A stretch of 64,000 nt of DNA. Origin: Heterodontus francisci (lineage: Eukaryota). Position 1 is the first letter of the stretch. Every line of letters begins with the position of its first letter. Shown here piece after piece: positions 18,969 to 57,903 of the stretch. The translations under genes and the position numbers were made by a program. Location: positions 55,239,895 to 55,303,894 of the forward strand of contig NC_090384.1 in the NCBI RefSeq assembly GCF_036365525.1, given 5' to 3'. Below the pieces are notes generated by a model. That model saw nothing but the letters and a program-made list of their open reading frames with translations. It made no database searches and had not been told where the DNA came from.

Positions 18969-19282
18969 CTTAAAATACCAAATGCATCTCCTTTTCAGTT
19001 ACTTTTTTAGTTTTTGAGTGAATAACCCGACATCGGATTAGTATGTCCCGATCAGATGGTTCTGGAGAAAATTCTATTTTTGTTACTGAACAGAAGAGAC
19101 CATTTGCAGCAATTTCAGTCTTTGTATTAGCCACCGGTCCTGTGAAGGGCTGCTTGCCTTTGAACCACTTAACTTCAATTTCTTGAGGTGTATAATCAGT
19201 CAGTAAAACAGTGAAAGTTGTCACTTTGTTTCTGGCTGCGTTGGGTTGCATTTGATTTCCGACAGTGGCATTTCTGACAAAC
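18969..19282 (-). pseudogene. Last visible IgC1-type exon, apparently frameshifted; B-strand Cys absent; stop just before a phase-1 donor
   Basis: Acceptors ttttaag| (exon start 19282) and tgtcag| (19273) read in phase 1 give (GLS)EMPLSEIKCNPTQPETK* with TGA at 19221-19223. The C1 body (NKVTTFTVLLTDYTP..W..NGLFCSVTKI..IRCRVIH..LVF*) is in another frame. Lengths of 314 or 305 nt are not multiples of 3, unlike all intact exons. The exon ends TTT TAA G|gtaaat. Confidence 0.7.
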
Positions 19283-19759
19283 CTTAAAACAGAACAGAAT
19301 ATGCAAATAATGAGTTAGTGCTATTTTCTGCAGATTGGTAGTTTGTCTCAACATTTTATTAAATGTATGTTAAATAATTTTGACAAATTAAATTGTTTAA
19401 TTTGGAAAATTTGGTTAGTATACTCATATGGTACAGCTGGGGTCGCTAGAAACAAAGGTAGGACTGAAGGAGTGTTTGGAGGCTGTGCAAGAGCCACAAC
19501 TCAAATATTCAACGGGATACCATTAAAAAAAGACTAAAAATAGATGTCATCAGGCCCAGATGATATGCATCCCAAAATACTGAAAGGATTAGGGGAAGGC
19601 GCTAAAAATCTTGGGAGATGGGAATTCTTCCAAGTTAACGCGAAAACAGCAAATGCTATACTGTTGTTTAAGAAAGGGATAAAAGGTAAGGAAATTAAAG
19701 TCTTGATTATTAATAAACTTTTACAGTCTATAATACAGGATGAAATTACTGGACAGCTG

Positions 19760-20222
19760 CTACCAAGTTATGAAGATAGATTGGAGAAGTTAAAAAAAAA
19801 AATAAAAAAGTTAGAACTGTTTTCCTTGAAGAAAAGGCTGAGAGGTGATTTGATAAAGGTGGTCAAAATCATGAGGGGGCTGGACAGAGTAGATGGAGAG
19901 AAACTGTTCCCACACGTGAAAGGATCGAGAATGAGGGCACAGATTTAAAGTATTTGGTAAGGGAAGCAAAAGTGACATGAGGAAAAACTTTTTCACGCAG
20001 CGAGTCGTTAAGGTCTTTAATCCGCTGCCTGAGAACGTGGTGCAGGCAGGTTCAATTGAAGCATTCAAAGGGAATTAGACAGTTATATGAAAAGGAAGAA
20101 TGTGCAGGGTTATGGGAAGGCAGCAAGGGAATGGAACTGAGGGAATTTCTCTTTCAGAAAGCCAGTGTGGACACGATGGGCCGAATGGCCTCCTCCTGCA
20201 TTGTATCGATTCTGTGATTTTG
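19760..20222 (+). mobile_element. Short 3' CR1 fragment; same subfamily at 3020-3410, 51645-52005 and 54640-54930 (-)
   Basis: RLRGDLIKVVKIMRG; shared tail tgaaaaggaagaatgtgcagggtta.gg. Confidence 0.8.
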
Positions 20223-20232
20223 TGAAATGCAC

Positions 20233-21290
20233 TGTTAATTCAGTCCCACTACTCCATAGGTCATAGCATATCAAATAAAGTTTCCCACCGACTGAAGAAT
20301 AGCCAAATAAACATTTTATTTGTCCCCCAGAATAAAGTACACCAAACCAGGTTTCTTTAAATAACATTAATTACGTATTAGGAAAAAAAAAGTCTTAACT
20401 ACTAACAAGATAAATCTATATATATGAAAAACTTCCTTACTTCCTTAACCCTCATGTACACACATATACATTTAAAAAAAAACTATTAACCGGGAGGAAA
20501 AGGATTTTGGTTTACAGCATTTTATTTTAGGAATAGAAGGAATAATAAAAATGATCAAGTTTAACATGTTCTGGTAGGATGTTTTCAGTACAGTGAAGTG
20601 TTCCAGAGTTGAGTAGTCCGATGTCACGTGAAGTCTCTCCAAGCAAGATTGATGAACAGTCTGATAGGTAGGCATTCACGGCAATTAAACTGCGGCAGAC
20701 GTCACATAGGTCTTCCATCACGGATGTAGCAACAGTCTAGCAGTAGAAGAATGCGTCAGATATCAGGATTTCTTAGCGCACAGGAGGCAGCAGGAACCAC
20801 AATGGATGCAGGGTTTCTTCTCAAGAGATGTAGGATTTCTTTACAGAGATGCAAATCTCCTTTATAGAGAGAGGTAACACTTTTCTGGGCCGTCCTCTCT
20901 TGCTCCAGGCAGGTCAAAACAAAGATTTCAAATTCCTGCTCTTTGTCCAATTCACTGGCTTTTTAAAGGGTTCAAAGTTATAAAAGAACCTTCCTGAACA
21001 TGGTCACATGTCCAGACACAGTGTCTCCCCCTGTCACTTAAAAGCTACCCATGAAAAGAGGTCAAACCCCTGTGGTTTCCTTGAAATTGCCTGCTGTCCT
21101 AGCCTTGTACAAGTTCAACTTCCTTTCAAAGAACCTATAAAGTTCAAATTTTTTTTACAAACTTCCTTTAAAAACATTGCAGAAATTCCAACTATCTGCA
21201 GGTGTCTTCTGCTGAGCAAAAATCCTTTTCTTAGCTTTTAATACACACAGAATTCTGAGTTCTGAGTATAAAAAAAAACCTTTGGTAACG
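20233..21290. mobile_element. Possible solo LTR
   Basis: About 1.05 kb non-coding block starting TGTTA and ending GTAAC(G), with near-matching flanks GCAC/GCAG. No internal genes. Weak evidence only. Confidence 0.3.
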
Positions 21291-21721
21291 CAGTCAATAT
21301 GGGTTTACAAAAGGTAGATTGTGTTTTGGGAGAGCCCTAAAGGTAGCAGCTCTGCATGGCAAACAACTGCACCCAGAAGGGTGATTTTAGTAGCAATTGC
21401 TCCTGACATTTCTCCGAGCTTTTACTAATGGTTTCAAGCACCACATCTGGGATCCTGCCTCATTTGGCATGCAAAACTTAATGGAAGTAACCAAAGTGTA
21501 ATGATTCAACACTTGGCAAACTCTAGTCCTCTGAAACCAAAGGTCTGGTCCATTTACCCATCTAGGTCCATTTACAATGGAAAGAAAAGGACTGAAAACA
21601 GGCATTCAAGTGTAGATTATCTTCTGCAGACATTTTTGTAGATAATGTGATAAATTCAGTTCTCATTTCCTAAATACTCTAGATTCCAGAGTAATTAGGG
21701 TTTTGTACCATTTTAACATAT

Positions 21722-21902
21722 CGGACAGTGTTAACCGTAGGTGTTGTTTAATAGGATTGGATAAAGCTTCATGTTCCACTACAAAGACAATTTCCTTATG
21801 ATCCAAAGCTGTTGGTGTTAACTCCAGGCATGAAAGTAACCAATAATAGCCACCTTTTTCCTCCTCAGGATCTACATCTGTGACTCCACTAAGGCAAGTC
21901 TC
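21722..21902 (-). pseudogene. Relict C-terminal half of a fifth post-TM IgC1 exon; 5' half lost at an L2 junction; donor mutated
   Basis: Manual translation ETCLSGVTDVDPEEEKGGYYWLLSCLELTPTALDHKEIVFVVEHEALSNPIKQHLRLTLS matches the D-E-F-G strands of the sister exons (GxY..S.L.L.P..D....VxH..L). It ends TCC G|atatgt at the phase-1 donor position, one change from gtatgt, and abuts L2 RT sequence at about 21905. Confidence 0.75.
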
Positions 21903-21904
21903 TT

Positions 21905-22465: not shown

Positions 22466-22589
22466 TAATTTTAAAGTTCAGTTGGCCTCAGTCTATTTCT
22501 TAACTTTCATTCCTTTTTCACACATCACCAAGCTATTCCAGTTCTCAATGTAGTTCATTAGCTAATTGCAAAAGCCCTGAAACAACTGT

Positions 22590-24330: not shown

Positions 24331-26232
24331 CTGCCAACACATAAGGGAGGCAGAGGAGTATTTGGAGAGTTTGCTCCAGAGCTCAGGCACACCGTGTAGA
24401 GAGGTCCAGAATCAGAATTGGTTAAGCGTGACCGATAGTTTACGGAGTACGCAGAAGCAAGCTGATACAGAGAACTTACCCAGAAACTGATGCTCTCCAA
24501 TAGATACAATGTACTTGTCACATGTGCAGATAAGGATAAAAAGTGTCGAAAGGACAGCCAGAATGCTGATCACAGCACCCTGAAGCAGAAGGGAGGAGGT
24601 AGGGAAACATAATGTGCTACTTGTAAGGAATTCAATAATTAGGAGGACGGATAGCATGCTTTGAAAGCAGGATCAACAGCTCCACGTGCTATATTGCTTA
24701 CCTGGTGCCAAGGTGAGCAGGATGAGAGACATTTCAAACTGGACTAAAAGGACATTAGAAGGGGGAAGGATCCAGTCACTGTGATCTGATTGTTGGGACC
24801 AACAACATAGCCAAGGAGTAGACAAGGATCGAAATGAAAAAACTGAACCTCAGGGGTTACAACCTCTGGATTATTACCAAAGCCATGTGAAAATTAGCAG
24901 AGGGATAAGCAGATTAGGGAGGTGAATACATGGCTGAAGGAGTGGTATGGGAATGAAGAGTCCCATTTCAAGGGACACTGGCACAGTACTGGGACATGAA
25001 GGAAATGTTTTGTTGCAATGGACTCCACTTGAACTGGGCTGGGACAAAGATATAGGGGTGATCACAAGAACTTTAAACTTGTAATTTTAGCAAACTGGAG
25101 TGGGGTGGCAGGGATAGGGGTCAGGTGGAAAAACTAGTAGAAATAATAATTCTAAAACAAATAAAAAGGTAGAGAATAGAATAGTCAGAAATTATGCTAG
25201 GCACTACATGTAAAGGGACAACTAAAAGATGTAAAGCCATTAAATCAGGAGATTAATAAATAAATGTGTGAGAAAAACAACATTAGAACAGCAGGAAAGG
25301 TTAGGACCCAAATAAGTGTTCTTATACAAACTCAGAGTATAAGGAACAACATGAATGAATTGCAGGTGCAAATTTATTTAGAGAGTATGACATGGTAGCC
25401 ATTACTGAGACATGGCTGCAAGACTGTCAGAACTGAGAACTGAAGCAGGTTATAAGTTCTACAGAAAGATAGGGAATATGATAGAGGTGGAAGAGTAGTA
25501 TTATTGATTATGAAACTACTTCTATGAAAGGAGAGGATATAATGAGAAGTAAACAGATAGTGGAGACTTTAGGGGTAGAATTAATAAAAGACTTTAAGAC
25601 TGTAGTGAGACTTGTGTGTAGGAACTCTGCTGACAACTGTGAAGTGGCAGGATGTATTGATGTAAAGACAAGATATAGTAAAGGCTTTAGTAGGGATTTT
25701 TAAACTTCCATATCAATTGTGATAAGCAGACAAGCTCATGTCAGAAAGAATTAATTTCCAGAGCGCGTTCAGGAGAGCTTTCCACAATATGTCCTACAAC
25801 CAATGAGGGAGGGGGGCAGGGGTACGACAGGCCTAATTATATTTGGTAATGAGCAATGACCCAGATTTAGTTAACAGCCTACTGGTATGTGACTATTTAT
25901 CTGTTGCAACCATAATATGATTGAGTTCAATGTTGTGCTTCAACAGAGAAACATGAAACAGATACTGAGATTCTAGATTTAGGTAAGGCCGACTTCATCG
26001 GGATGTGACGCTGATCATTGTAAACCGGGCAAATATGGTACTGGGTAAAATGACAAAAGATCATTGGGAGGTGTGCAAAAAAAAATTCAATATGATGCAC
26101 TGAGCAAGAGCTCGACTTGCCATGGAAAACTAAAAGGGTAAGGACAACATAAAAGAATGAAAAATAAAGCATACAAGAATGCAAAAAACAGCACTGATCC
26201 TGGTGAATGGGAGAACAGCAAAGGATAACAAA

Positions 26233-27535
26233 TGGACTTATTAGCGAGAGGCAGCATGGTTTTGTGAAGGGGAGATTGTGCCTCACTAATTTGATTGAGT
26301 TTTTTGAGGAAGTGACAAAGATGATTGATGAAGGAAGGGCAATGGATGTTATCTATATGGACTTCAGTAAAGCCTTTGACAAGGTCCCGCATGGCAGACT
26401 GATACAAAAGGTGAAGTCACATGGGATCAGAGGGGAGCTGGCAAGATGGATACGGAACTGGCTCGGTCATAGAAGACAGAGGGTAGCAGTGGATGGGTGC
26501 TTTTCTGAATGGAGGGATGTGACTAGTGGTGTTCTGCAGGGATCAGTGCTGGGACCTTTGCTGTTTGTAGTATATATAAATGATTTGGAGGAAAATGTAG
26601 CTGGTCTGATTAGTAAGTTTGCGGACGACACAAAGGTTGGTGGAGTTACGGACAGTGATGAGGATTGTCCGAGGATACAGCAGGATATAGATCGGTTGGA
26701 GACTTGGGCGGAGAAATGGCAGATGGAGTTTAATTCGGACAAATGTGAGGTAATGCATTTTGGAAGGTCTAATGCAGGTGGGAAGTATACAGTAAATGGC
26801 AGAACCCTTTGGAGTATTGACAGGCAGAGAGATCTGGGCGTACAGGTCCACAGGTCACTGAAAGTGGCAACGCAGGTGGATAAGGTAGTCAAGAAGGCAT
26901 ACGGCATGCTTGCCTTCATCGGTTGGGGCATAGAGTATAAAACTTGGCAAGTCATGTTGCAGCTGTACAGAACTTTAGTTAGGCCACACTTAGAATATTG
27001 TGTGCAATTCTGGTCGCCACACTACCAGAAGGACGTGGAGGCTTTGGAGAGGGTACAGAAGAGGTTTACCAGGATGTTGCCTGGTCTGGAGGGCATTAGC
27101 TATGAGGAGAGGTTGGATAGACTCGGATTGTTTTCACTGGAACGACGGAGGTGGAGGGGCGACATGAAAGAGGTTTACAAAGTTATAAGCGTCATGGACA
27201 GAGTGGATAGTCAGAAGCTTTTTCCCAGGGTGAAAGTCAGTTACTAGGGGACATAGGTTTAAGGTGCGAGGGGCAAAGTTTAGAGGGGATGTGCGAGGCA
27301 AGTTCTTTACACAGATGGTGGCGAGTGCCTGGAACTTGTTGCCGGGGGAGGTGGTGGAAGCAGGTACCATAGAGACGTTTAAGAGGCATCTTGACAAATA
27401 CATGAATAGGATGGGAATAGAGGAATACGGACCCCGTAAGTGCAGAAGGTTTTAGTTTAGGCAGGCATCAAGATCGGCGCAGGCTTGGAGGGCCGAATGG
27501 CCTGTTCCTGTGCTGTACTGTTCTTTGTTTGTTCT
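26233..27535 (+). mobile_element. Young 5'-truncated CR1 insertion with a long open RT segment and 8-bp TSD
   Basis: 346-aa ORF with [30 protein letters not shown]; CR1 3' tail; direct repeat ATAACAAA at 26225-26232 and 27536-27543. Confidence 0.9.
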
Positions 27536-28998
27536 ATAACAAAACAGATAATAAGAGCTTCAAAAAGTGTGTATGAAAAGAAACTTGCAAAGGATACCAA
27601 AATCAACACAAACAACTTTTACTATTATTTTAGGGAAAAGAGGGTGGTTAAGTGTAATGTGGCCCCCTTAAGAAATAGCAATGGTGACATTATAAATGAA
27701 AATAAGAAAATGGCAGACATGTTAGAGAATTACTGTCAATTTTTCCAGTACAGGAAAATTCTGGATATCCCATGAAGCAAATATTGAATCAGAGACAGGA
27801 ACTCATTAATGCAAGGAAGAAAATAATGGCACTAATGAGTGACAATTCCCCGGGACCAGAGATTTAAAGAAAGTCGGTGACAACATTGTCATTGCCCTAA
27901 CTTTAATCTTCCAAAGTCCTCTCAATTCAGGAACCACTCCTTTAGATTAGAAAATTGCACATGTTACTGCGCTATTTAAGGAAGGTGAGAGAGGGAAACC
28001 AGGGAATTAAAAAGACTGGTTAATCTAATATCTATTGTCGGGAAATTACTACAATCTATAATTAAGGATGGAGTGACTGAATACCTCGAAAATTTTCAAC
28101 TGATCAAAGAGAGCCACGTGGACTTGTGTCTGACAAACCAGTTTAAATTTTTTGAAGAGGTGACTAAAGTAGAGGACAGGGAATGTCTTTGGATATTATT
28201 TACATTGATGTCTAGAAGACATTCAATAAATTGCTTCATGGAATTGAGAGCAAATTATTGACCTGGCTAGGAGATTAGCTGAGTGACATGAGACAAAGAA
28301 TAGGGCTAATGGACAGATACTCAAATTGTCAGGATGTGATTTGTGGCGTCCCATAGGGATCGGTGTTAGTGCCTCAACTATTTACAGTATTTATTAGATG
28401 ATCTGATAGACAGCCACATATCCAAGTTTGTTGATGACACAAAAAAGGCAGCATTGGAAGCAGTGTAGATGGTAGCATAAAGTTACAAAGATATTAATAG
28501 ATTAAGTGAATGGGTAAAACTGTGCAAATGGATTTCAATATAGGCAAGTGCGAGGCCATCCACTGTAGACCTAAAAAAAGATAGATCAAAGTACTTTCAA
28601 AAAGGTGAAAAGTTAGAAACAGTGGAGCTTCAAAGCGACTTGGGGTCCATGTACATAGATCATTAAGATGTCATGGGCAGGTACAAAAAATAATTAAAAA
28701 GGCTAATGGAATGCTGGTCTTTATATCAAGCTGACTAGAATACAATGTGTTAGAAGTCATGCTGCAGCTATACAAAGACCTGGTTACAACACGCGTAGAA
28801 TACTGCGTTCAGTTCTGGGCATCACACCTTAGGAAGGATATGCTAACTTTGGAGGGAGTGCAGTGTAGGTTCAGTGCAATGATACCTGGACTCAAGAGTT
28901 AAATTAAGAGATGAGATTACATAAAGTAGGACAGTATTCCCTGGAATTTAGAAGCCTGAGGGTGATCGAAGTTTTCTCAATATTAAGAGGAACTGATA

Positions 28999-29563: not shown

Positions 29564-29574
29564 AGAGTCAGAGA

Positions 29575-29975: not shown

Positions 29976-30385
29976 AAAGTATTGGAAGTTCATGCTAATC
30001 TGTGATCTAGTTATAAAAAAAGGACCAGAAAGTAGGAAATATAAGCACAATATATATATTTCATAAACATCAGCACTTTCTGAATTTTTGACACAAAACA
30101 TTTGCAGTAATTTTGCAGTTGTAGTTATTTAAATGTGAAAATTTGACAAAACATTCCTGTTTATAGATAAAAGCAAAATACTGCAGATGCTGTAAATCTG
30201 AAATAAAAACAGCAAGTGCTGAAAATAATCAGCAGGTCAGGCAGCATCTGTGAAGAAAGAAGCAATAGTTAATGTTTCAGCTCTGTGACCTTTCATCAAA
30301 ACACCAATTCATAGAAATATGCAGCTAACATGAAGTTTAGTACTAATGTAGTTCAGTATAGAAAAAATATGCACTGAATTCTTAC

Positions 30386-30709
30386 CTCTAAGACGTAAAA
30401 TGAAACTGGACCTTGAAGGCCTGTGTGAAGTTGGGAAATGAAGAACCTCAACTTTGAATTCCATCAGATGATATTCTGGCTTAATTAACAATTTCCATTG
30501 ACTTTCACGGTAGAAAAGACCAGTCTCTTCATCTTTTTGGGGGTCAGTAGAAATAATTCCTGGATCATCAGTTCTTTCATCATTTTTGAACCACATGAAC
30601 ATTGTTTCCTTTGGAAAGAAGCCATGTGCATAGCATACAATTGTTGCTTCTTCTCCTATCATTGGGAATTCTGGTATACTTTTTATGTATTTTACTAATG
30701 GAGGAGATA
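30386..30709 (-). CDS. NCR3LG1: Post-TM IgC1-type exon 4 (F-strand Cys replaced by Val)
   Basis: Acceptor tgttgttacag|TA, donor AGAG|gtaaga, 324 nt, phase 1-1. VSPPLVKYIKSIPEFPMIGEEATIVCYAHGFFP..W..TGLFYRESQW..MEFKVEVLH. Confidence 0.82.
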
Positions 30710-37284: not shown

Positions 37285-37596
37285 CCAAAGGAGCTAGTTC
37301 ACATGCAGTCTTTCTGGACTCTGTGATACTTTTGTGCTGGAATTCACAAGTCAACATCTTGCCAAAATCTTCCCTAACAGGTGTGAATTTCAGACGACTT
37401 GTAAAATAATAAAGGCCATCCTTTCCGAGGACTGCTTCAGTATCAGCATTCATTACCTCCAATATGATACCATCCTTTTTCCAAATAACTTTAATATCTT
37501 TTGGAAAGAAGGAATATATTCTACAAGATGCACATGCACGTTCATCTACAATTGGAGCTTCTGGTGTCAGTTTTATATCATCACATTTTGGGATAG
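37285..37596 (-). CDS. NCR3LG1: Post-TM IgC1-type exon 3 (both canonical Cys present)
   Basis: Acceptor ctttcctcag|CT, donor TTGG|gtaagt, 312 nt, phase 1-1. AIPKCDDIKLTP..ASCRIYSFFPKDIKVIW..DGLYYFTSRL..LTCEFQHKSI. Confidence 0.85.
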
Positions 37597-43005: not shown

Positions 43006-43383
43006 CTTTTATATTTAAATTAACCTCTTTACATAGTGATGAATTCGTGGCTGGATGTTTTACTTCACAAACATACCCTGCGTCATGGTCTTCACAAATG
43101 GTTGGTATAAAAAGTAGAATGCTGGTGACACTGTATGTGTTGTCTTCATATTCCAGTTCAGTTATACTGTGGGCATATTTGGGTTGCTCTGTTTCTCTCC
43201 CATCAATGAATTCTGTTTTTCCTGGCTCAAGTTTCACAATTTCTTTGGTTATGCCGTTCTTTTGTTTGTACCAAGTGATAGCCAGCGGTCTGGGTTTAAA
43301 TCCATTGATAGGGCAGGTCACGGCGAGCACTTCTTCATGAATAATATGAGGCGGTATTACTATATCAGTCATCCTCGGTTCAA
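43006..43383 (-). CDS. NCR3LG1: Post-TM IgC1-type exon 2 (both canonical Cys present)
   Basis: Acceptor tttattcccttttgaaaaaaag|TT (slightly atypical), donor AAAG|gtattg, 378 nt, phase 1-1. EPRMTDIVIPP..VTCPINGFKP..ITW..DNTYSVTSIL..DAGYVCEVKHPA. Confidence 0.82.
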
Positions 43384-44344
43384 CTTTTTTTCAAAAGGGA
43401 ATAAAATAAAATATTTACTATTTTAAAAGTTCTCAGAAGTTATAGCGTATAGACTACATTAAAAAAAGTTTGTTACCTACTGCCTATCAAGTACAAAGGG
43501 AAATTCAGGCAAAAAAAAGCATCTAACGCTGTTGTACACAGTCCAAACAGCTGGCCTCACCAGACAGTACAAGATAGCCAGTAATAGAATTTTAAATGTG
43601 GTCCACACTACTTCAGGCTTATTCAGGAAATATAACTATGAGACACCATGCAAAATGTTCCAACTGTGCAATCCTTTAGGCTCAAATTTAAAGGCATGTA
43701 TCCAGTTAAAAGAAATGGGCAAATGAGAAAAAAAAATTATGCAAAGGCTCAAAAATGACTTTTTAAAATTTTTTAATCTCTACAAATGTAGCATGGGAAA
43801 TGACAAGCACGAATTAATCTGCAGGACACAGGAACAAAGCAAACAGCCCAAGATTTCATGTCACAAAGTGCTGCCATGCTTACCCATGCCAAGCCCTCTC
43901 TCAACATGACAGCTCTTTCACTGCATCTCATCAAACCCATATCTCTGCAGGGCACGCAGTCAAGTTGCATACACAACTAAATGCTTTGCCAAACACTTTT
44001 AATGACTTCATTCAATAAATTATTGCAACACAAATATGGTCACTAACTGTTACCTAGAAAGAGCTTCCATTTGGGCATGTCAGCCATCAGCATCTCCCCC
44101 ACCTACTTCACAAAATAAAGCAGTGTTGTGACATTGGAAAGTTGTGTCATGCTATCCAGTATGAAAAGATATGAAAATACTGATCAGTGCAATTGTTTTA
44201 TATTTGTGGGCATCACATTCGGTGACCTTACAGTGCTAGATAGGAACAAACTGAAGGTATAGCTGTGTGGAGTGATAGCCTTGCCGACCACTAGGACTGC
44301 CATATATATGTTGCAAGGTGTCTGCAAATGTCGTTTTCGCTGAT

Positions 44345-46095
44345 GACATGGTCCTACAACTTCTTCTTTGGCCTCATTGTCTCGAGAGACAATGGTTTTT
44401 GAAGCAGCACCTGGAGTGGCTATAAAGGCCAATTCTAGAGTGACAGACTCTTCCACAGGCACTGCAGATAAAATTGGTTGTCGGGGTTGTTACACAGTTG
44501 GTTCTCTCCTTGAGCTTTTTTTTTTTGCCAACTGCTAAGTCTCTTCCACTCGCCACTCTTTAGCCCTGCCTTTATGACTGTCCGCCAGCTCTGGCAATCG
44601 CTGGCAACTGACTCCCACGACTTGTGGTCAATGTCACAGGATTTCCTGTCGCGTTAGCAAACGTCGTTTAAAGCGGAGACATGGATGGCCGGTGGGTCGA
44701 ATACCAGCGACAAGCTTGCTGTACAATGCTTCCTTGGGAATCCTGCTATCTTCCATGCGGCTCACATGGCCAAGCCATCTCAAGCGCCCCTGGCTCAACA
44801 GGGTGTATATGCTGGGGATGTTGGCCACCTCCAGGACTTCTACGTTGGAGATACGGTCCTGCCACCTGGTGCCAAGGATTCTCCGAAGGCAGTGAAGATG
44901 GAATGAGTCGAGACGTCACTCTTGACTGACATACGTTGTCCAGGCCTCGCTGCAATAGAGCAAGGTATTGAGGACACAGGCTTGAAACACTCGGACGTTT
45001 GTGTTCCGTGTCAGTGTGCCATTTTCCCACACCCTCTTGGCCAGTTTGGATGTAGCAACGGATGCCTTTCCCATGCGCTTGTTGATTTCTGCATCGGGAG
45101 ACAGGTTACTGGCGATGGTTCAGCCCAGGTAGGTGAACTCTTGAACCACTTCCAGAGCGTGGTCGCCGATATTGATGGATGGAGCATTTCTGACATCCTG
45201 TCTCATGTTATTCATTTTCTTGAGGCTGATGGTTAGGCCAAATTCATTGCAGGCAGCCGCAATCCTGTCAATGAGTCTCTGCAGACACTCTTCTGTGTGG
45301 GATGTTAATGCAGCATCATCAGCAAAGAGAAGGTCCCTGATGAGGACCTTCCCTACTTTGGTCTTCGCTCTAAGATGGGCAAGGTTAAACAACCTGCCAT
45401 CTGATCTTGTGTGGAGGAAAATTCCTTCTTCTGAAGACTTGAACGCATGCGAGAGCAGCAGTGAGATGATGATCCCAAACAGTGAGAACACAGCCCTGTT
45501 TCATGCCACTCAGGATAGGAAGGGGTCTGATGAGGCACCGCTATGCTGAATTGTGCCTTTCATATTGTCATGGAATGAGGTGATGATACTTAGTAACTTT
45601 GGTGGACATCCGATCTTTGCTAATAGTCTGAAGAGACCACGTCTGCTGACGAGGTCAAAGGCTTTTTGGTGAGATCTATGAAAGCAACGTAGAGGGGCAT
45701 CTGTTGTTCGCGGCATTTCTCCTGTAGCTGGCAAAGGGAGAACAGCATGTCAATGCTTGAAAGCCGCACTGTGCCTCAGGGTAGACATGCTCAGCCAGCT
45801 TCTGGAGTCTACTTAAAACAACTCGAGCGAAGACTTTCCCCACTACGATGAGCAGGGAGATTCCACGGTAGTTGTTGCAGTTAACGTGGTCACCGTGGTT
45901 CTTACAGAGGGTGATGATATTGGCATCGCGCATGTCCTGTGGTACTGCTCCCTCATCCCAGCACAGGCAAAGCAGTTCATGGAGTGCTGAGAGTGTAGCA
46001 GGCTTGGCGCTCTTGATTATTTCAGAGATAATGTCGTCCTTTCCAGGGGCTTTTCCATTGGCTGGAGAATCAATGGCATCACTGAGTTCCTACAA
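44345..46095 (-). mobile_element. 5'-truncated RTE-clade (BovB/RTE-1-like) LINE
   Basis: NYRGISLL, PEAQCGF, KAFDLVSR, DGRLFNLAHLRAKTK..DLLFADDAAL, RLRWLGHVSRM, C-terminal CSACGRVCHSRIGLYSHSR and a short gaa-repeat tail near 44360. Confidence 0.88.
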
Positions 46096-46923
46096 CTGAT
46101 TCCTGCTAATTTATAGTAAGCAGAGACAGTTATTCCTGGTCATTTGCAAAATGGTATGCCAAAGCCTACAGGTACGATCTGGTTCTTATTGATCTCCAGG
46201 TCATGATTTATTTCATCATGCCAGTTCATTCAAGAAATAGTGCATGAGAAACATTTTTAAAAATTACAAGTCGTAAACAAAAGTTAGCTCCTAAATATTG
46301 CTCCAAAAATACATAATTAAAAATTTCAATAAATATGGAAAAATGCCAAAAACAGTTCTGTAAACATTGCAACCAAAAACTCCCTCGCGTGCAGCATCCC
46401 TTGCTCTTGTTCTCATCAATTCACAAAGGAAAAATAGCAAACCTGGTATAAATGTTATAGAATTGTGCTCAATATTTAAATATTCTTCCATACAACCCAA
46501 GGCTTAAATGACACCAAGAGGATTTCATCTGTCTAAATTCACAAGATTGATTAATTATAGACCAGAAGGCGACACTATAGGACCAGCTTTCCAAACATTG
46601 TGATCCAACTGTGTTTGTTGCACATCTGCTCTTCATACAAAGTTAAAATTAAACACTAGGAGAGCACTGGTATAAGAGGAGGCAGCTCAGAATGTACAGA
46701 ATGAATTGGATAAAATACATAATGAGCAAAGCAATATCGGGCTTCATGTGTTAGTGACAACTTTTCCATTTTGTAATGGTGGATCATTTACCCATAATAT
46801 TCTGGAAATCATTCCATAACAAGGTAGTTTCAACTATGTAAAAATAAATGTACAGGTATATCTCTTTATAAACAAAATTTATTCAGTTATGCTCATTTGA
46901 TATCACTTGCAACATTTACTTAC

Positions 46924-47349
46924 TTCCTTCAACTTTCAGCATGATCTTCTTAATTATAGGCTTTGCAAGAGTACTATGTTGGACTTGAACCTGCAGAGTG
47001 GCTCCATCATCTTTATGAATATCAGGCAATAGCATAACTTTGCAATGCACACTGGAGCTACCATCATTGTTGTGCTTAACAACTGGCATCTCAAATTTGA
47101 AGGATCCACCTTGCTCATCAAATTGAGATCCATTTATTGAAATAAGTTTCTGCTGGTCATCTGCTGTAGGATTCTGAGTTGTATAGGTCCACTGATAAAT
47201 CTCATTTGGCTTGTCTTCCCATTTTCTTTGTAGTGACCAGTGAACAGAAATGTTCTCAGGCCTATACCCAGAAATCTGACAATTCAGAAGAGCTTCTTGC
47301 AAATGTATAATCCGTGGAGGTTTGCTGATATCAGAAACTTTTGGAGGAA
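46924..47349 (-). CDS. NCR3LG1: Post-TM IgC1-type exon 1 (predicted cytoplasmic; long central insert; F-strand Cys absent)
   Basis: Acceptor tttttttttag|TT, donor GGAA|gtaagt, 426 nt, open, phase 1-1. VPPKVSDI..LNCQISGYRPENISVHW..NNDGSSSVHCKV..DDGATLQVQVQHSTL. Confidence 0.82.
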
Positions 47350-49116
47350 CTAAAAAAAAACTTAGAAGTTTATCCATTCTTTGCCACAAGGTCTTTGTCA
47401 CTTCAAAAATATCAGCATCAATCCATTCCATGACTAAACATTACTATTACTGGAATAATAAATATCAACACGACAATACAACAGTAGATTTAGCATATAA
47501 CTAAATATGAAATTAAATAAGATGTTCATCAAAACAAATTTGCCTTCACCAAAATAATCATAAGCATCCCCAAGTTAAAGTATAACTATGAGGTAGAGAA
47601 ACACAAATAGACAAATCAGGGACTAAGTGAGAAGCTAAGGCAAAGGTAGAGAAACATCAGGCCACAAGGTCAGAAATCAGTAACTGAAAACAGCAGAGAT
47701 CAGTAATGCATGACAGAAACCAGTGTTCCATAGACAGATAATCCAAAAAAAAGCTAGACCCAGAGAGAAATCAGGAAGGCACAGAAATCTGGGAAGATCT
47801 ACAGACAGAGGGGATCAGGCAAACACAAATCTCCAAAAGGAAGAGAGATAGCAAAATAGGAGACACATCAGCTGCATGAAAGGCAGACAGACAGACTGCG
47901 GTGGATAGAGACAGATCAAATTGTACAAATATTTTAAATTACATATTTCACATTAATATGGTTACATTTATTGACTGAATTCTCATGTCTTTTAATGCCT
48001 TCATTAAGGTTTTTACTTAAGACTGCAGCCTCTTCCAAAGCCTACATTTAGAACTAATGTGTTTGCTTGGACCTGTGACTTTCAGTTGAATTTGATTTCT
48101 GCAGTCTGATAAAGTGCAGTGCACCGAATTTCCCAGGATATATCAGTACTAGTTAGCTGGACCATTTTCATCAGCTTTTTTTTTTCTAGCACTTTCTACC
48201 TGGTAGCAGTTTTTCAAAAAAAAAAAAAATTGTTTAAGTTTCAAAAACTTAAGTAAAACAATTTATAGATTTTTTTGAAAAAGCCACTCTTTGGGAATAG
48301 AAAAAGTGATTAGCAACAAGTGCATTAGTAGTGCAATATATTGTGCTTATAAATTTCAGAAAACACATTAAGCTGAGTGTGAGATAGGTGTGAGAACACA
48401 CAAAGGAGTGAGAGTACAAGCGTTCACGAGACTGAAGGGGGGGGGGGATAGGGAGGGCAAACAGACAGGAGGGTAGTTTTCAAGCTGCCTTCCTTGCTTT
48501 TAGTTTCTACATATCCTGTTTCTCTGTTCAGAGTTGTTTCTGTTTCACTTTGTCAAATGCTGAAGCCATGGTATCTTACCAATATTTAAAATTCCCCCTT
48601 TCTATGGACACTAGTTTTAAACTGAGCTGTCGAGAAGTAAACAGATGCAAAGTAATATTCAGTCAAATGCAGAATAAAATACTTGTTTTTAATTGTATTA
48701 ACTTAAAGAAAAGCCTGGGTTATTACCTTGTTCACAGCATTATCCATTGATTATTTGCAAATACTGTTTATAAAAATGTTTTTTTTTAAAAAGCTGAAGT
48801 TTTTTTATTTGAACAGACCTGCTGTATTGGGTCTCCTTGCTTACAAGCTGCAATGATATCATGCATACTGCTTGTTGTATAACTTTAGATTGACCTTTGA
48901 TAGCATCAGTCGCTGCCCAACCCCAAGAAAAGCACTCCAAACAAAAACACTGACGGATCACCCAACTCAGTACAGATCAATGATATGATAATTCAACTTT
49001 ACATGAGGAAAATTTATCAAATGAATGAGTGAGCCAGAGAAAGAGCTCAAATAAGACAGTTTTGAATGCTTATGTGCTTCTTAAATTTCTAAAAAGTGAA
49101 TTAAAGAATATTTTAC

Positions 49117-49233
49117 CTTTTCTGAGATACTTCAGATACGCATAAAATCCAACACCCAGGATCACTAAACACATCAGTATACTAACAATTACACTTGCAA
49201 ATATTATCCCAACTGGTACAACAACTTCTGGCT
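49117..49233 (-). CDS. NCR3LG1: B7-H6-like gene, transmembrane exon
   Basis: Acceptor tctacag|AG, donor AAAG|gtaaaa, 117 nt, phase 1-1. EPEVVVPVGIIFASVIVSILMCLVILGVGFYAYLKYLRK is a long hydrophobic helix followed by basic stop-transfer residues, indicating type I orientation. Confidence 0.85.
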
Positions 49234-52009
49234 CTGTAGACAAAATACACAATGTTCATTTTAATAGTGAACAGCAAAATGGAGCAACATCTGCAAATTT
49301 AGACATATTCAAAGACAATGGTTTATCTTCAAAGTAAAAAAAAAACTACAAATGCACAGCAAGGTAATAGAGAAAAGTTCTGATTAACATTAACCTCTCT
49401 CTCAGCTGTTGGCCAGCCTGTTGCATCTTTTCAGCATTTCTTAATTTTCCTTGAGCTCCAGAATTTGCAGCTATTTTAAAATCTGCACAATGAATTACTT
49501 TTATGAAATTAAAATGTTACCGTAACATAGCTTTCTTAATTCATGGTACACTGCACTGAGCAACAAAAACAAGTCACATCAATTAAAAATAACAAAAAAA
49601 TGTCCAGATACTAGAAATCTGAAACAGAAACAGAAAATGCTGCAAACATTCAGCAGAATAAGCAGTATCTATGGAGAGAACAAGATCAAGGAGAGACAGA
49701 CCACGAGAAGGGCCAGCACATCATGAAGGACGTCAACAGAAAATTAACCCCTCAGTCTCTCAAAGCAAAAGAATTTGAGCATTCTAAGTTTCAAGTTATA
49801 TTACTGACTAAGTTGTCAGCTTTTAAGTTGCAACAGTTTTACAGATAATGTGAATACAACCAGTTGTTAGAAAAGTTTAAAACCTTGGTTGACCTTTACG
49901 GTTTTAGGGTAAGCTGAAGTAAGAGAAAGTTTTTTTAAAAAGCTTACAATATAGTGTCTCCTAATGTACTTTCAAAGGAAAGACTGCGGGTCAAAAATAC
50001 AACTACCTGCACTTATACAGTGCTTATAATGTAGAGAAAAATGTCCCAAGGTGGAGATATTACTAAGTGTGACCAGGAGCTTGGTCAAAGAGATAGGTTT
50101 TACAGTCTTCAAGGAGATGGTGGTGATACAGAGGTGCAAGTTCAGGGCAGGGAATTACAGAGCATGTAGCCTAGTTGCTTGAAGGCATGGCCACAAATAG
50201 TAGAGCAAATCGAGGGCAAGTGACCAGAATCAGAGGAGTGGAGAGTTCAGGTTGCATGGTTGTAGGGTAGAAGGGAGGTTATAGATGGGTAAGGCCATTA
50301 AGAAATTTAAACACAAAGAGACTCTTTTTAAATTTGAGGTTTGGGTGAATTGGGAACCAATATGGTTTAATGAGGATAAGCAGGATAGGCAAGCAAGACT
50401 TGCTGTGGAGTGCAGGCAGCAGAGGTTAGGATGAGCTGGTTTACGGAGGGTAGAACGCTGGCTAGGAAAGCAATGGAACAGTCAAGTCCAGAAGTGACAA
50501 AACAGGGTTAAGAGTTTCAGTGGCATATGGGCAAAGATGGGGCAATAGCAGGTAATGTTATGGAAGTGGAAGTAGGCGGTTTTCATGATGGAGAGGATGA
50601 GATTGCAAAGTTGGCTCAGAATTGAATTGGTCACTAAGATTGCAAATGCTATGGTTCAGCCCGAGATGGTGGCCTGGGAGGGGGATGCAGTTCAGATACA
50701 GAGTTTGTGGAAGAGAATGAAGTCAAAATGTTTTTGGACTTCCATTGTTCAGCTGGAGGAAATTGCAGGTATTCCAAGTGAATGTCCGACAGCATAGAGG
50801 TATTGAAAAGGATTTTTTTTTTTTTTTTTTTTAAATGCTTTCATGGGATGTGGGCATCACTGGCAGGCCAGCATCTGTTGCCCATCCCTAGTTGCCCTTG
50901 AACTGAGTGGCTCGCTAGGACATTTCAGAGGGCAGTTTAGAGTCAACCACATTGTTGTGGATCTGCAGTCACACGTAGGCCACACCAGCTAAGGACAGCA
51001 GATGTCCTTCCATGGCACCATTACTGAGACTAGCTTTCAATTCCAGAGTTTTTAAAAAATAATTAAATTTATTAATTGAATTTAAATTCCACCAGCTGCC
51101 ATGTGAGATCTGAAACCAGGACATTAGCCTGGGCCGTTGGATTACCACTATGCAGAGAGAGAGGCAGCAGAGAGATAGAACTGAAGTCATCAGGAAACAT
51201 GTGGAAGCTCACCCCACGTCTTCCGAAGATGTTGCCAAGGAATAGTATGTAGATGAGGAACAGCAGGGGGACAAGGATAGATTCCTGATGGACTGCAAAG
51301 ATTTGGAACTGAAGCCAATGTTTCAGTTGTTCTGGCTACAACTGAATAGGTACAACTGAAACCAAGCGAGAGCAGTCCCAGAGAATTTGACAACAGAGGG
51401 AGTCGTTGTATGAGGATGGTGTGGTCAGCGTCAAAGATTGCCAAAACATTAAGGAAAAATAATGCACTATGGATATAGCAGCAGAGAACATGACTGGTTA
51501 TGAGAGTTTTGATATGTGAGGGGCACATTTGAGTAGAGCAAATCAAACAGGGAGTTGCAAGAAAGCTTTCCAAGTATTTAGGATGCAATAACATGTCCAA
51601 GACTCGAAAGAAATGGGCGGTTGGAGATGGAGGTTGGGGGTGGATGTATTCAAAATCATGACGGTTCTGGAAGAGTAGATAGGGAGAAACTGTTCCCACT
51701 TGTGAAGAGATTGAGAACAAGAGGAAACAGATTTAAAGTAATTGGTAAAATAAGCAAAAAGTGACTTGAGAAAAATGATTTTCACGCAGGAAGTGGTTAA
51801 GGTTTGGAATGCACTGCCTGACAGTGTGGTGGATGCAGGTCAATTTAAGCATTCAAAAGGGAATTAAACTGTTATATGAAAAGGAAGAATGTGCAGGGTT
51901 ACAGGGAGAAGGCGGGGTGTGGCACTAGATGAAATGGTCACTAGCAAAGACGGTGCTGACACGATGGGCCACGTGGCCTCCTTCTGTGCTATTACAATTC
52001 TGTGATTAC

Positions 52010-53990: not shown

Positions 53991-56714
53991 TAGGTTTTTC
54001 AAGGAGGAAACGATGGCAGTGTTTTCGAAAAGGAGGGACAGTTCTTGACGTAAGGGAAACACTTATAATGTAAGCTACCAGGGGGTCAAGAAGGAAAGTT
54101 GGATGGTTACCAGCTTAGTGGCAGTGGTATAAAGGGAGCAAGACGTGGATCTCATAGATGAGCTCAGGGAGGCATGATGAGACAGAGATGGGGGTTCAGA
54201 GTTAAGGCAGGTGGGTGGCTTAGTGTCAGGGAAGCAACAAAGGCAGCTGAATGGATGCTGTCTATTTTGGTGACAAGCCCCTTATACATGTCACCAGAAG
54301 CGAGGGTGCAGAGCACAAGGAACAGGGGTTTAAAGAGATAGTTGATCGTGAAAAATAGCCTAGGGCTATACTCTGCTTTCCAGGATGATCCAAGAAGAGT
54401 GAACGGTTTTGACAAAAGAAGCAGAGGTCTGATAGAGTTTGAAGTGGTCCAGATAAGTTAAGCCAGTTGTGTGACAGGACCCCCAGTCTGCACCCTAGGG
54501 ACATGCGGAAGCAAAGATGAGGGCCAAAACAGGGAACAATTGGGATGGGAGTGAATATTTTGTTAGGGAAAGTGCATTCAAAAGGTGGAGATGAGAGGGT
54601 TGAGCAAATGGATAGCTGCAGAGGTATTGCGGCTATCACAGAATCACAGAATTGTTACAGCACAGAAGGAGGCCATTTGGCCCATCATGTCTGCACCGGC
54701 TCTCCGAATAAGCAATTCACTTAATGCCATTTCCCTGCCTTCTCCCCATAACCCTGCACATTCTTCCTTTTTATATAACAGTCTAATTCCCTTTTGAATG
54801 CTTCAATTGAATCTGCCTCTACCACACTCTCAGGCAGTGCATTCCAAACATTAACCACTCGCTGCATGAAAAAGATTTTCCTAGTCATTTTTGCTTCTTT
54901 TACCAATTGCTTTAAATCTGTTCTCTCGTTATCTATTGTAGTGACAAATTGAGATTTTTCAGGGCTGACGCAGAAGAAAGTGGGGTTGGAAAGAACGGTA
55001 GGGAGATGTGGGTGGTGAAAGATATAAGAAAGTGGTCCACGAATGTCCTTGTCAGTGATTATACCACAGGAATAGCGACCCCATACGATGGCAAGATTGA
55101 AGGGATGACTGTGAACAACAGGTTTATATGCAAGTAGGTTTAAGGAGAGGAGGGTAGAGAATTCACAGGTGAGAGGGCAACAGGAGCTGAGGATAGGAGT
55201 TGCTCAGTGCAAAGGCTGAGGGAAGAGAAGAGAAAGGATATCTTGGAGTGGGGCCACAGACAATGAGAATTTTGACAGGGAGGCAAAAGGGGTGGAACTA
55301 AACAAGGTGTTTGAAGGAGAAGGTACCAGAGGCATAGTGGCGAGAGATATCATGATGTCTTGGGATTAGGACCACACTGGCACTATGACAAACAGGCAGT
55401 TAAAACAAGGGAGTAATGTAGATGGAAAAATGATTTTCTGGGATTCGAAACACAGGTTTCAATATGCAAGCAAAAATACTGGCAGGATATACTAAAAACA
55501 ATCTGATGCACTCTGAGGCTCATAGCTGCCAAAGCCAGAAGCAATGCATATTGAAATTCTTGATGGTTCAGCCAGAGGTAATCAGTTTCTCTCTCAATCT
55601 GTAAACATTAACAGTAACAGAGGTTAACTTGCTAATACAGGCAACTGAACAGACTGGGTCCAAGTGACCACCAGGACACGTGAATGATGTCCAGTCAGTT
55701 CAGTAATATCTTTATTCTCCTTCAATAGCAAGGCAAAAGAGCTCAAGTCTCAGCTACTGCTAACTAAATTCCATTTTAAATATATATGATTTTTATTAGA
55801 GATCAAAAATTAGAAAATGTCCTGTTGCAGGCATGGCACAGCTTTGTTTTTAATCGATCACAACATTTTCATGTTCAGCAACTTTGGCAGTATTGGCAGG
55901 TATGACCTACCGCATAGAACCAAACTGGCAAGAGGCCTTGCTTTCCATGTAGCCAAAACCAGTAAATCTCACAACATATTTATTTTATTAAATGTATCTG
56001 CGGAGTCACAACCAGTATGAATATTTATGTAAATGCCCCACAGAACACAGTCATGATATTGAGACATTATTTTCATGTTTCACCCCCTACAAAAAGTAAT
56101 TTTCGAAATGGTTGAGTCGCACCTATGGAAAATGCAGCTCACATTATATAGTAGGAATTATTGAAATACCCTCTGCATTTATGTTCCTTTTTTCCTTGCA
56201 AGTTTCTTCCAGAAGGTTTCATGGGCTATGGATATCTTCTAATACCTCACACAAGCAGCCACTGTTGATGTGCCAGCTTTGATACTCAAGTTTTGGCAAG
56301 TCATTCAACTGTGGAGATGTTTAGTCAAAATTGATGATACCATCAAACTCCACATGCACAAACTTTTACCAGAGCTCATATAGTTGATATGAAATTTAGA
56401 TTGTTTTAAGCTCCTAGCACAATTACCAAACCAGGAGCACAGAATTTCAGTTTAATATATATAAACAATATATTTCAGCTTGAAATTATCCTGTGAGCAC
56501 TGAGCACACAAATATTTATTGCACTCATCTGAAATTACCCTCCCTACTAATATTATCTAAGCCTTTAACCCCAAACGGCAGAGGAATTTCAGATGTACAC
56601 ATTAAACTTTCATGTACTATTATCTTAGAGTAAAATTTCAGACATCATTTTATATCTGCATTTTCTGGCACAAACCAGACTTCATGTATGCGTACATCAA
56701 AACACAAAACTTAC

Positions 56715-57035
56715 CTTTGACAGTCAGTTGGGTCGTCAATTTTAAAGCTTTACTAAGTGATCGGTGCTGCACATAGCATATATAAACAGTACCACTGTCT
56801 TGAAGTGTTGGGCGCAACCTCAAACGGCTAGAAACATTGTAGGTTCCATCATCATTTTCAACTGGGGATCCTGTGCAGATATGTTTTGAGATGATTTGTT
56901 CCTTATCTTTTGTTTTCTGTATCCAATTCATCTCAATTGTGACAGGATAAAAGCCAACAATGTCACACTTCACTGACTTCTCTGTACCATTCTCAATTGT
57001 GATTGCATTTGAAGATACGCTCACCTGTGGTGTGG
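56715..57035 (-). CDS. NCR3LG1: B7-H6-like gene, extracellular IgC1 exon
   Basis: Acceptor cttacag|CC, donor AAAG|gtaagt, 321 nt, phase 1-1. ATPQVSV..KCDIVGFYP..W..ICTGSPVENDDGTYNVSSRL..DSGTVYICYVQHRSL has both canonical Cys, the FYP motif, the YxCxVxH motif and N-glycosylation sequons NGT and NVS. Confidence 0.9.
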
Positions 57036-57540
57036 CTGTAAGGATCAATAGAACAGATGTTTGACATTTAATATTAGGATGTAAAACAGTGAAAAAAGCT
57101 ATGAGGCTAAGTAATAACTGCACACATTGAAATGCACGGAGCTGAAAATATCCATTCCTTACGAGGAGAAAGGCATGAAATGTGTAGGGAAAAGGATTAC
57201 ATCAGCAAAACAGGATAATCAGATGTCTGTACCCACAGGAAAAAGACACTGGATGACACTGTCATTTCCTAGTTTAATGTAAAGAAAATTATAGGAAAAA
57301 TATAGTGCACTGAATTTCACTGACCATTACCCAGCCTTCTCTTTTCCATGCCATGGACAGGTTTATTTATTTAAATGTAACATGTAAAAATTAAAAAGGT
57401 ACAGTAATACCACTAGACTGCTTATAGTTGTATGCATATGGTATCATTGAATATCTTCACCTGATCTGTTTTAAATTTATTGTCATAGCAATGCAGCAGA
57501 TTACATCAGCAAAAGAAGAAATAATTTTTGTGACTCTTAC

Positions 57541-57903
57541 CTGAAACAGCCATTGACGATTTTCCACTTCCACTATCTGGGGTTATAAAAACAATACAGG
57601 TGTAATCTCCTTCTTCAGCAAATTGAACATTTGGAAGAAAAAGGGAAGCAATTCCCTTCTTTAACTCATCGTCAAAAATTGTGGCTCCTTTTCTGTATGG
57701 TGTATGTTTCCCACCAGTGAATTGATATACCTCTCGTTTGGTCATATCTGGAGAACCTAATTCTTGGAAGAACCACTGAACTCCCACATTTTTAAGGTCG
57801 ATTTGTTTCGTGTAACCAGACACTCGGCATTCGAGAAGAACATCGGTATTTACAATGGCTTTCACAGCTCTTGAGTTCATCGACACAATTAGATCACCTT
57901 CCT
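57541..57903 (-). CDS. NCR3LG1: B7-H6/NCR3LG1-like gene, IgV-domain exon (first exon visible in the window)
   Basis: Acceptor ttgcag|AG, donor TCAG|gtaaga, 363 nt, phase 1-1. Translation EEGDLIVSM..LLECRVSG..GVQWFF..VYQFTGGKHTPYRKGA..LKKGIASLFLPNVQFAEEGDYTCIVFITP has the V-set Cys/Trp/Cys and closely resembles the human B7-H6 V domain as I recall it (VFEFFGDHQEAFRPGA, LKSGDASLRLP, EEAGEYRCEVVVTP). Confidence 0.9.

Follow-up and report, generated by a model that had tools for sequence, protein, structure and literature searches.

A gene of the horn shark, Heterodontus francisci, raises the question of whether Ig domains of the C1 set can form part of a membrane protein on the cytoplasmic side of its membrane. 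Such domains (Ig, TCR, MHC, beta2m, tapasin) are a defining feature of adaptive immunity, and the accepted view places them strictly in the lumen or outside the cell. The window analysed here is a stretch of 64,000 nt (GCF_036365525.1, NC_090384.1:55,239,895-55,303,894), and the coordinates below refer to it. It encodes a V-C1 pair, a transmembrane (TM) segment and, behind that segment, a chain of C1-set domains.

Gene structure and transcripts

Seven intact exons are found, all on the minus strand and in phase 1-1, each with an AG acceptor, a GT donor and a length that is a multiple of 3 (Table 1). Together they comprise 2241 nt, or 747 codons, exactly the figure given in a preliminary description of the locus, which had proposed seven in-phase GT-AG exons in the order V-C1-TM-C1-C1-C1-C1. 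RefSeq XP_067902345.1 ('uncharacterized protein', 792 aa), an independent gene model, contains every exon peptide as an ordered substring; whole-protein analyses were run on it after each exon had been checked against it separately. The leader exon is absent from the 64,000-nt window, with no leader-like exon anywhere in 57904-64000; in XP_067902345.1 a hydrophobic leader is present at residues 7-25. The horn shark has several tandem paralogues of this B7-H6-like gene.

Table 1. Exons and exon remnants of the B7-H6-like gene, in window coordinates
Feature	Position	Strand	Remarks
V-set exon (B7-H6-like V domain)	57541..57903	-	363 nt; residues 27-146 of XP_067902345.1; Pfam V-set 4.7e-10; AG/GT
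C1a exon, extracellular C1-set domain	56715..57035	-	321 nt; Pfam C1-set 3.9e-13
TM exon	49117..49233	-	117 nt, 39 codons; hydrophobic core, then KYLRK
C1b exon, first post-TM Ig domain	46924..47349	-	426 nt; Pfam C1-set 20.2 bits
C1c exon, post-TM	43006..43383	-	378 nt; Pfam C1-set 5.2e-10; RNA joint 46924->43383
C1d exon, post-TM	37285..37596	-	312 nt; Pfam C1-set 7.9e-11; peptide within XP_067902345.1
C1e exon, post-TM	30386..30709	-	324 nt; Pfam C1-set 4.1e-6; AF2 pLDDT >90
Alternative last exon, coding part, RefSeq isoform X1 (797 aa)	27460..27534	-	tblastn 100% identity, 25 residues
Fossil second half, fifth post-TM C1 domain	21726..21869	-	tblastn match to C1a residues 57-105; aligns with Pristis domain
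Last exon of isoform X2 = former C1f exon	18969..19282	-	19 residues, then TGA 19223-19221

The GT..AG joints 49117->47349 (TM to C1b) and 46924->43383 (C1b to C1c) are present in spliced contigs of four RNA runs, which cover two organisms and two studies. The contigs with these joints have a depth of 100-400 versus 2-8 for introns; overall, RNA depth is about 55-410 in exons and 0-15 in non-repeat introns. Individual contigs, 2321 and 3110 nt long, span TM-C1b-C1c and extend 771-798 nt further 5', the size of leader, V and C1a together. Because the contigs join the TM exon to 47349 and continue beyond it, unbroken across the C1b acceptor, the post-TM exons cannot form a separate gene, nor can the TM exon be terminal or always skipped, the possibilities against which the preliminary description had set its model. 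A separate downstream gene is rejected also on the finding of no leader-like exon between the TM exon and C1b, and a terminal TM exon on its donor read-through, which is seen in one contig only, at depth 4.1 versus 411.8 for the spliced form. The horn shark gene could still have a minor form without the TM exon, as rare variants are dropped from contigs. The exons of the two RNA organisms differ by four synonymous and three nonsynonymous changes and one in-frame 3-nt deletion.

Two further, damaged C1 exons had been described at the 3' end, and both are real. One is a half exon (21869-21726) that adjoins a LINE fragment replacing its first half and has AT instead of GT at its donor site. The other, C1f, has a frameshift near 19230, so that the transcript ends at the TGA listed in Table 1; the out-of-frame remainder, 19233-18970, is still open to the orthologous stop and matches Pfam C1-set (1.6e-8, 35.2 bits). 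A second TM further downstream was considered and rejected: none is present in the protein, and the hydrophobic open reading frames below 18969 sit among LINE sequence. The leader of the next gene is found at 3866-3802.

Ectodomain, C1-set chain and family

A PDB sequence search with V and C1a gives human B7-H6 at 1.6e-32 (32% identity), CD276 (B7-H3) at 3.5e-20 and TAPBPR at 1e-15, and a Foldseek comparison of the ectodomain with human B7-H6 structures gives TMt 0.88-0.91 and rmsd 2.2-2.8 A. The proposed B7-H6-like character of the receptor is upheld in both sequence and fold (TM-score about 0.9). B7-H6 is the ligand of NKp30, and some homologues of the horn shark protein carry the source-given names B7H6 or NCR3LG1. 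Sequence and model comparison appear to place this horn shark gene in the NCR3LG1 (B7-H6) branch of the B7 family; this assignment is part of the explanation that, as a whole, we consider probable.

The claim of four C1 domains behind the TM is borne out. Pfam C1-set (PF07654) has a gathering cut-off of 21 bits, and C1c (40.0), C1d (42.6) and C1e (27.5) score above it, with C1b just below at 20.2 bits (7.6e-4). Both the family HMM and the AF2 model pick out C1b, whose homologues number 189 cluster representatives. This domain starts ~3 residues past the basic anchor and has a 20-residue loop insertion and a Val at the F-strand Cys position; in C1e, too, Val replaces this Cys. C1c and C1d have both canonical Cys, kept across 450 My. 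The AF2 model has a mean pLDDT of 87, and all four post-TM domains exceed 90, C1b except at residues 352-373. Best PDB matches of the post-TM domains, C1d likewise, are Ig heavy-chain constant regions (1.6e-14), and titin I65-I70 is the top Foldseek match of the whole model. Pfam finds Ig families only, and no B30.2 (PRY/SPRY), in the exons and in eight relatives, and a search of the family for known cytosolic signalling domains or motifs behind the Ig chain found none. In one Xenopus laevis model, which may be a model fusion, a Tachylectin domain follows the first post-TM C1.

Among relatives with one internal TM, 155/160 cluster representatives have 1-14 C1 domains behind it (99/103 + 56/57). 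Gene models with the layout come from more than 40 species and cover chimaera, sharks, rays, sturgeon, bichir, coelacanth, lungfish, amphibians, turtles and one amphisbaenian. Direct orthologues in Pristis, Heptranchias, Pristiophorus, Rhincodon, other batoids and Callorhinchus have six post-TM domains, in agreement with the earlier proposal of an ancestral chain of at least six. These sequence comparisons show SP-V-C1-TM-(C1)n to be a layout of long standing in the family. It appears to be uncharacterised so far: in the full texts searched, no account was found of Ig domains behind the B7-H6 TM.

Membrane topology and alternative readings

XP_067902345.1 has one internal hydrophobic segment, residues 261-279 (Kyte-Doolittle 3.0 over 19 residues; AF2 helix 270-290). 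The preliminary description had likewise placed a single TM helix after the V-C1 pair with KYLRK on its C-terminal side, and that is what is seen after the leader. No C-terminal TM was found in this protein, where only one segment reaches the hydropathy threshold, as in nearly all relatives. The flanks of the TM in the family have net charges of -0.6 (N side) and +2.6 (C side). Both canonical Cys are present in 85% of pre-TM versus 45% of post-TM domains of the family (Fisher p=3.6e-17; family statistics count related sequences, so that p-values overstate independence) and in 44/44 Ig heavy-chain control domains (100%). Cys parity per domain does not separate the two sides of the TM, the ectodomain too being odd in half of the proteins. 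The core Trp is kept in 88% of the family's post-TM domains. The observed/expected ratio of sequons is 1.74 before the TM, 1.14 behind it and 1.50 in the Ig heavy-chain controls, and conserved sequon columns of the family alignment lie in the ectodomain only, with none behind the TM. From the signal peptide, the one TM with its positive C-side flank, the reduced Cys pairs and the lack of post-TM sequon enrichment, we infer that the four post-TM C1 domains lie in the cytosol.

The reading that we consider probable is that of a type I B7-H6-like protein with V-C1 outside and the C1 chain in the cytosol as a stalk tied to an intracellular partner. The main mRNA would yield a type I membrane protein with a cleavable signal peptide and an extracellular V-C1 pair, presumably the NKp30-type ligand face. 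KYLRK would anchor the single stop-transfer helix, after which four C1-set domains would come almost without linker; as these are made after the stop-transfer, the chain would stay in the cytosol. The ancestral chain may have had six to seven position-specific domains, of which the horn shark would have lost the fifth by LINE insertion and the sixth by frameshift. The post-TM domains are predicted to be ordinary beta-sandwiches with the core Trp, about half of them without the B-F disulfide pair. Functionally, the chain might represent a rigid cytosolic stalk, 15-30 nm long, that links display or clustering of the ectodomain to the intracellular partner, an inside-out arrangement that would be analogous to the butyrophilin B30.2 domain.

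Other readings of the same layout can be considered. The TM exon could be a cassette and the C1 chain could have evolved for a secreted SP-V-C1-(C1)n protein (cf. UrIg, tailless Ig heavy chain), in which case the membrane form drags a functionless chain into the cytosol. The exon is symmetric (117 nt, phase 1-1), C1c and C1d retain both disulfide Cys, and RefSeq isoforms that skip exactly the TM exon exist in five genes of sharks, a ray and a caecilian (Cetorhinus, Carcharodon, one horn shark paralogue, Hemitrygon, Microcaecilia); these isoforms would be secreted with the whole C1 chain, a form that the preliminary description had left out of account. This origin is nevertheless unlikely, given that the TM-included junction of the horn shark gene is at full exon depth in 4/4 runs, that the TM with its basic juxtamembrane motif directly abuts the first post-TM domain in 155/160 representatives, and that the post-TM domains are without the disulfide and sequon signatures of the ectodomain and of true secreted C1 chains. 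A non-standard topology, with the hydrophobic segment no simple stop-transfer and the C1 chain luminal or extracellular as in IGSF1, is the least probable of these readings. It would suit the general knowledge that the secretory pathway is the only other setting in which C1-set domains are known, as well as the length of the hydrophobic stretch (about 30 residues), but the single hydrophobic segment, the lack of a C-terminal TM, the three basic residues after the helix, the family-wide positive C-side flank and the missing sequon or disulfide signature of luminal exposure all argue against it.

The chain might also be translated yet represent decaying baggage without a function of its own, at least in the horn shark gene, where two of six ancestral domains are already broken; related galeomorph sharks likewise stop after C1e, and the canonical Cys pair is lost in half of the domains. 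Against such decay, the four post-TM exons are all open despite only 23-35% mutual identity, positional counterparts match collinearly at 30-50% identity as far as coelacanth and amphibians, over about 450 My, and AF2 confidence exceeds 90. Between the two RNA organisms, moreover, synonymous changes outnumber nonsynonymous ones per site, and the one indel keeps the reading frame. Decay is therefore considered very unlikely, only marginally less so than a luminal chain.

Going beyond this locus, and only tentatively, a position-specific and conserved C1 chain in the cytosol may be common to the orthologues and paralogues of B7-H6 in essentially all jawed vertebrates other than mammals. It would act inside the cell as a sensor or scaffold controlling NK-ligand display, with mammals later swapping in the Gag-like tail. 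If the cytosolic placement is true, it would make this chain the first example of an antibody/MHC-type constant domain that functions on the reducing side of a membrane. A C1 chain behind the membrane anchor of an NK ligand would be a new use of the fold, conserved for about 450 My with its disulfides partly shed. With it, B7-H6 would have, inside the cell, a module comparable with the butyrophilin B30.2 sensor, and the regulation of stressed-self ligands before mammals would become testable.

Comparison with known systems

The best PDB match in both sequence and fold, human B7-H6 (NCR3LG1), shares the signal peptide, the V and C1-like ectodomain and the single TM. Its tail of about 170 residues is described as Gag-like and has no Ig domains, whereas in the horn shark protein four C1-set domains follow the TM. 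The preliminary description had allowed that similar tails might already be described, and such tails are indeed present in databases. A nurse shark entry of 1092 aa, 'Natural killer cell cytotoxicity receptor 3 ligand (B7H6)', already has the SP-V-C1-TM-(C1)n layout, and in this protein and in NCR3LG1-named models of axolotl, turtle and Rhineura the basic motif is followed by VPP and then by 6-7 C1 domains. The nurse shark protein differs in having 7 post-TM domains versus 4, and as its ectodomain is only 46% identical to that of the horn shark protein it appears to represent a paralogous lineage.

Robakis et al. reportedly found in 2008 that IGSF1 needs two internal hydrophobic segments plus a C-terminal TM. 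With C2-type loops, these two segments, the C-terminal TM, cleavage and all Ig domains luminal, IGSF1 is unlike the horn shark protein, which has one segment and no C-terminal TM. Common to both is that Ig domains are encoded on either side of an internal hydrophobic region, as described for IGSF1 (PMC6552037). UrIg2 and Ig heavy chains have the TM after the last C domain and a disulfide in every domain (PMC12227049). They are like the horn shark protein in the V domain followed by several C1-set domains, but in the latter the TM separates the first C1 from the second, and nothing hydrophobic comes after it.

Ig-fold chains that work in the cytosol without disulfides are found in titin, obscurin and myotilin, which are soluble sarcomeric proteins with I-set domains. 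The post-TM domains of the horn shark protein differ in being C1-set by Pfam and tethered to a membrane protein. Butyrophilins (e.g. BTN3A1, V-C-TM-B30.2), whose B30.2 arrangement is a model for inside-out signalling, share a B7-related V-C ectodomain, one TM and a folded cytosolic beta-sandwich, the last being predicted in the horn shark protein. The folded unit is B30.2/SPRY in butyrophilins and a C1-set Ig chain in the horn shark protein, and the analogy between the two would be one of function.

Exon structure and transcription of the horn shark gene

The B7-H6-like gene of Heterodontus francisci is on the minus strand, in sequence that contains zero N and in which LINE fragments are abundant across the window. 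All seven exons have an AG acceptor and a GT donor, display phase 1-1 and have lengths divisible by three. Their sum of 2241 nt, or 747 codons, bears out the open frame of about 747 codons reported in the preliminary description, and Pfam recovers the proposed order of a V-set exon followed by C1-set exons, C1b being marginal. Mutual identity among the Ig exons is only 23-35%, and these are therefore old duplicates that have been kept open. The exon structure of the horn shark gene is confirmed.

Features of the B7-H6-like locus and neighbouring elements
Feature	Position	Strand	Length	Remarks
V exon	57903-57541	minus	363 nt	Pfam V-set 4.7e-10
C1a exon	57035-56715	minus	321 nt	Pfam C1-set 3.9e-13
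TM exon	49233-49117	minus	117 nt	
C1b exon	47349-46924	minus	426 nt	Pfam C1-set 7.6e-4, 20.2 bits, slightly below cut-off
C1c exon	43383-43006	minus	378 nt	Pfam C1-set 5.2e-10
C1d exon	37596-37285	minus	312 nt	Pfam C1-set 7.9e-11
C1e exon	30709-30386	minus	324 nt	Pfam C1-set 4.1e-6
Isoform X1 alternative last coding exon	27534-27460	minus		RefSeq isoform X1
Half C1 exon	21869-21726	minus		Second half of domain, intact in sawfish orthologue
Former sixth post-TM domain exon (C1f)	19282-18969	minus		Frameshift near 19230
Leader exon of next tandem paralogue	3802-3866	minus		ATG, 21-codon hydrophobic leader, phase-1 GTAAAG donor
Long open LINE frames (reverse transcriptase, endonuclease), introns and flanks	26207-27247, 13341-13934, 62385-63452	plus, minus, plus		

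In-phase exons are no proof of a single transcript in an IgSF gene. For this reason, public runs were mapped to 43241-49240, a stretch that extends from the TM exon into C1c (four runs, two organisms, two studies). Contigs from the four runs display the joints 49117->47349 and 46924->43383, both GT..AG on the minus strand, at a contig depth of 98-412; the proposed splice of the TM exon to the C1b exon is thus found in transcripts. Depth is ~55-410 in exon bins but 0-15 in non-repeat intron bins, and together with the spliced joints this contrast identifies the runs as RNA, the run-type label being only a guess. Single contigs of 2321 and 3110 nt cover the TM and C1b exons and enter C1c without a break. 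Both run 771-798 nt further 5′, which by length alone fits leader+V+C1a (762 nt), and the longer one runs 1627 nt further 3′, also by length alone. Unspliced read-through of the TM donor is present in one contig (depth 4.1). The second organism shows seven exon differences, four synonymous and three nonsynonymous, plus an in-frame 3-nt deletion.

The intron between C1b and C1c harbours a repeat at 44241-46240 with reverse-transcriptase-like open reading frames and a contig depth of 10^4-10^5 in 4/4 runs. This is a highly abundant LINE family that is probably expressed. Some of the LINE copies with long open frames may be young.

A search of 1.84 billion representatives with the C1b exon returned 189 matches. 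The top match, XP_067902345.1 (P0001), is a Heterodontus francisci entry of 792 aa labelled 'uncharacterized protein isoform X2', and it contains each exon peptide as a substring, in order. This database protein, not the self-joined exons, was used for whole-protein analyses. Its leader exon was searched for in the window and is absent there; a closely similar leader, belonging to the next tandem paralogue, sits in a GC-rich stretch.

Two further, damaged C1 exons had been described, and both are present. In the half exon a LINE fragment stands in place of the first half, and the donor is AT. In C1f the frameshift makes the transcript end at TGA 19223-19221. The remaining 87 codons (18970-19233, minus) are open in another frame to the stop of other species; the break therefore either arose very recently, is allelic or reflects misassembly at an A-rich run. 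The last coding exon of isoform X1 is antisense within a stretch that holds LINE-like open reading frames (27485-27775, plus strand) and may be an exonised repeat.

Phylogenetic conservation and predicted structure

A single internal TM segment is found in 103 of the best 150 representatives, with 1-14 post-TM C1 domains in 99 of the 103. A further search, with the coelacanth tail as query, brought in 57 more cluster representatives, and 56 of them share the layout. Judged by sequence comparison, the post-TM C1 chain is a family trait and not a peculiarity of the horn shark. Named family members include cartilaginous fish (chimaera, many sharks and rays), other fish (sturgeon, bichir, reedfish, coelacanth, lungfish) and tetrapods (caecilian, newts, axolotl, many frogs, two turtles and the amphisbaenian Rhineura). 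Most are labelled 'uncharacterized', some 'hemicentin-1-like' and several 'natural cytotoxicity triggering receptor 3 ligand 1'. The V-C1-TM-(C1)n architecture is supported by both RNA and deep conservation.

In 14 species the best match of every horn shark domain is the domain at the collinear position, and identity is 30-50% as far out as coelacanth and amphibians. In the family a basic motif, typically followed by VPPK, lies a few residues before the first post-TM domain. Comparison of P0001 with orthologues (P0195, P0199, P0201 and P0197, P0203, P0003) places the last domain at the fourth post-TM position in direct orthologues of Heterodontus, lamniform and carcharhiniform sharks; those of cow sharks, sawsharks, whale shark, batoids and chimaera keep six post-TM domains. 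In the 818-aa Xenopus laevis relative P0062, a Tachylectin domain (6e-30) lies immediately behind the first post-TM C1; this reflects either a genuine lectin tail or a gene-model fusion.

Against solved structures, residues 28-252 match human B7-H6 best (1.6e-32), followed by B7-H3 (3.5e-20) and TAPBPR (1e-15). An AlphaFold2 model from a 34-sequence alignment (mean pLDDT 87) superimposes its ectodomain on B7-H6 crystals with a TM-score of 0.88-0.91 and an rmsd of 2.2-2.8 A, and displays a helix at 270-290. The post-TM region is modelled as four beta-sandwiches, with pLDDT >90 outside loop 352-373; the best structure matches of these domains are Ig heavy-chain constant regions (1.6e-14).

Side of the membrane

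The horn shark protein has a signal peptide and one hydrophobic segment with a positive C-side flank. Counted over 15 residues, net charge in the family is -0.6 before the TM and +2.6 after it. Both canonical Cys residues are present in 110/129 pre-TM domains (85%) but in only 213/474 post-TM domains (45%; Fisher p=3.6e-17, the sequences being related so that independence is overstated), and in 44/44 Ig heavy-chain controls. Post-TM domains carry Val, Leu or Ile in place of the lost Cys, and the core Trp is retained in 88%. N-glycosylation sequons per 100 aa number 1.31 pre-TM, 0.64 post-TM and 1.31 in the controls; observed/expected ratios are 1.74, 1.14 and 1.50, again with independence overstated by relatedness. 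Only three columns of the 34-sequence alignment have a sequon in at least 30% of sequences, all in the ectodomain. These figures all point to a post-TM chain without exposure to the ER lumen, and the C1 chain is likely to reside in the cytosol, as had been proposed from the gene structure.

Two findings speak against so simple a reading. C1c and C1d retain both Cys everywhere, and RefSeq has isoforms from which precisely the TM exon (31-39 residues) is missing, in basking shark, white shark, a paralogue of the horn shark, a stingray and a caecilian (P0195, P0196, P0154, P0170, P0181). Such products would be secreted, leaving every domain extracellular, and their recurrence from sharks to caecilian suggests a conserved membrane/secreted switch in the family. 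The horn shark runs have the TM-included junction at full depth, in contigs that hide rare variants. For the membrane form, a cytosolic chain is the preferred reading; the working model, drawn from the B30.2 domain of butyrophilins, would make it a scaffold or sensor of the inside-out type.

Shark and Xenopus B7H6 were reportedly first presented in a 2012 paper. The full-text literature searched, a set that does not include that paper, yielded no account of Ig domains located after the B7-H6 TM. In a nurse shark entry of 1092 aa named B7H6, the TM is followed by seven C1 domains. In UrIg2 the TM is placed after nine C1 domains (PMC12227049). The nearest precedent for Ig domains on either side of a hydrophobic linker is IGSF1, although its topology differs.
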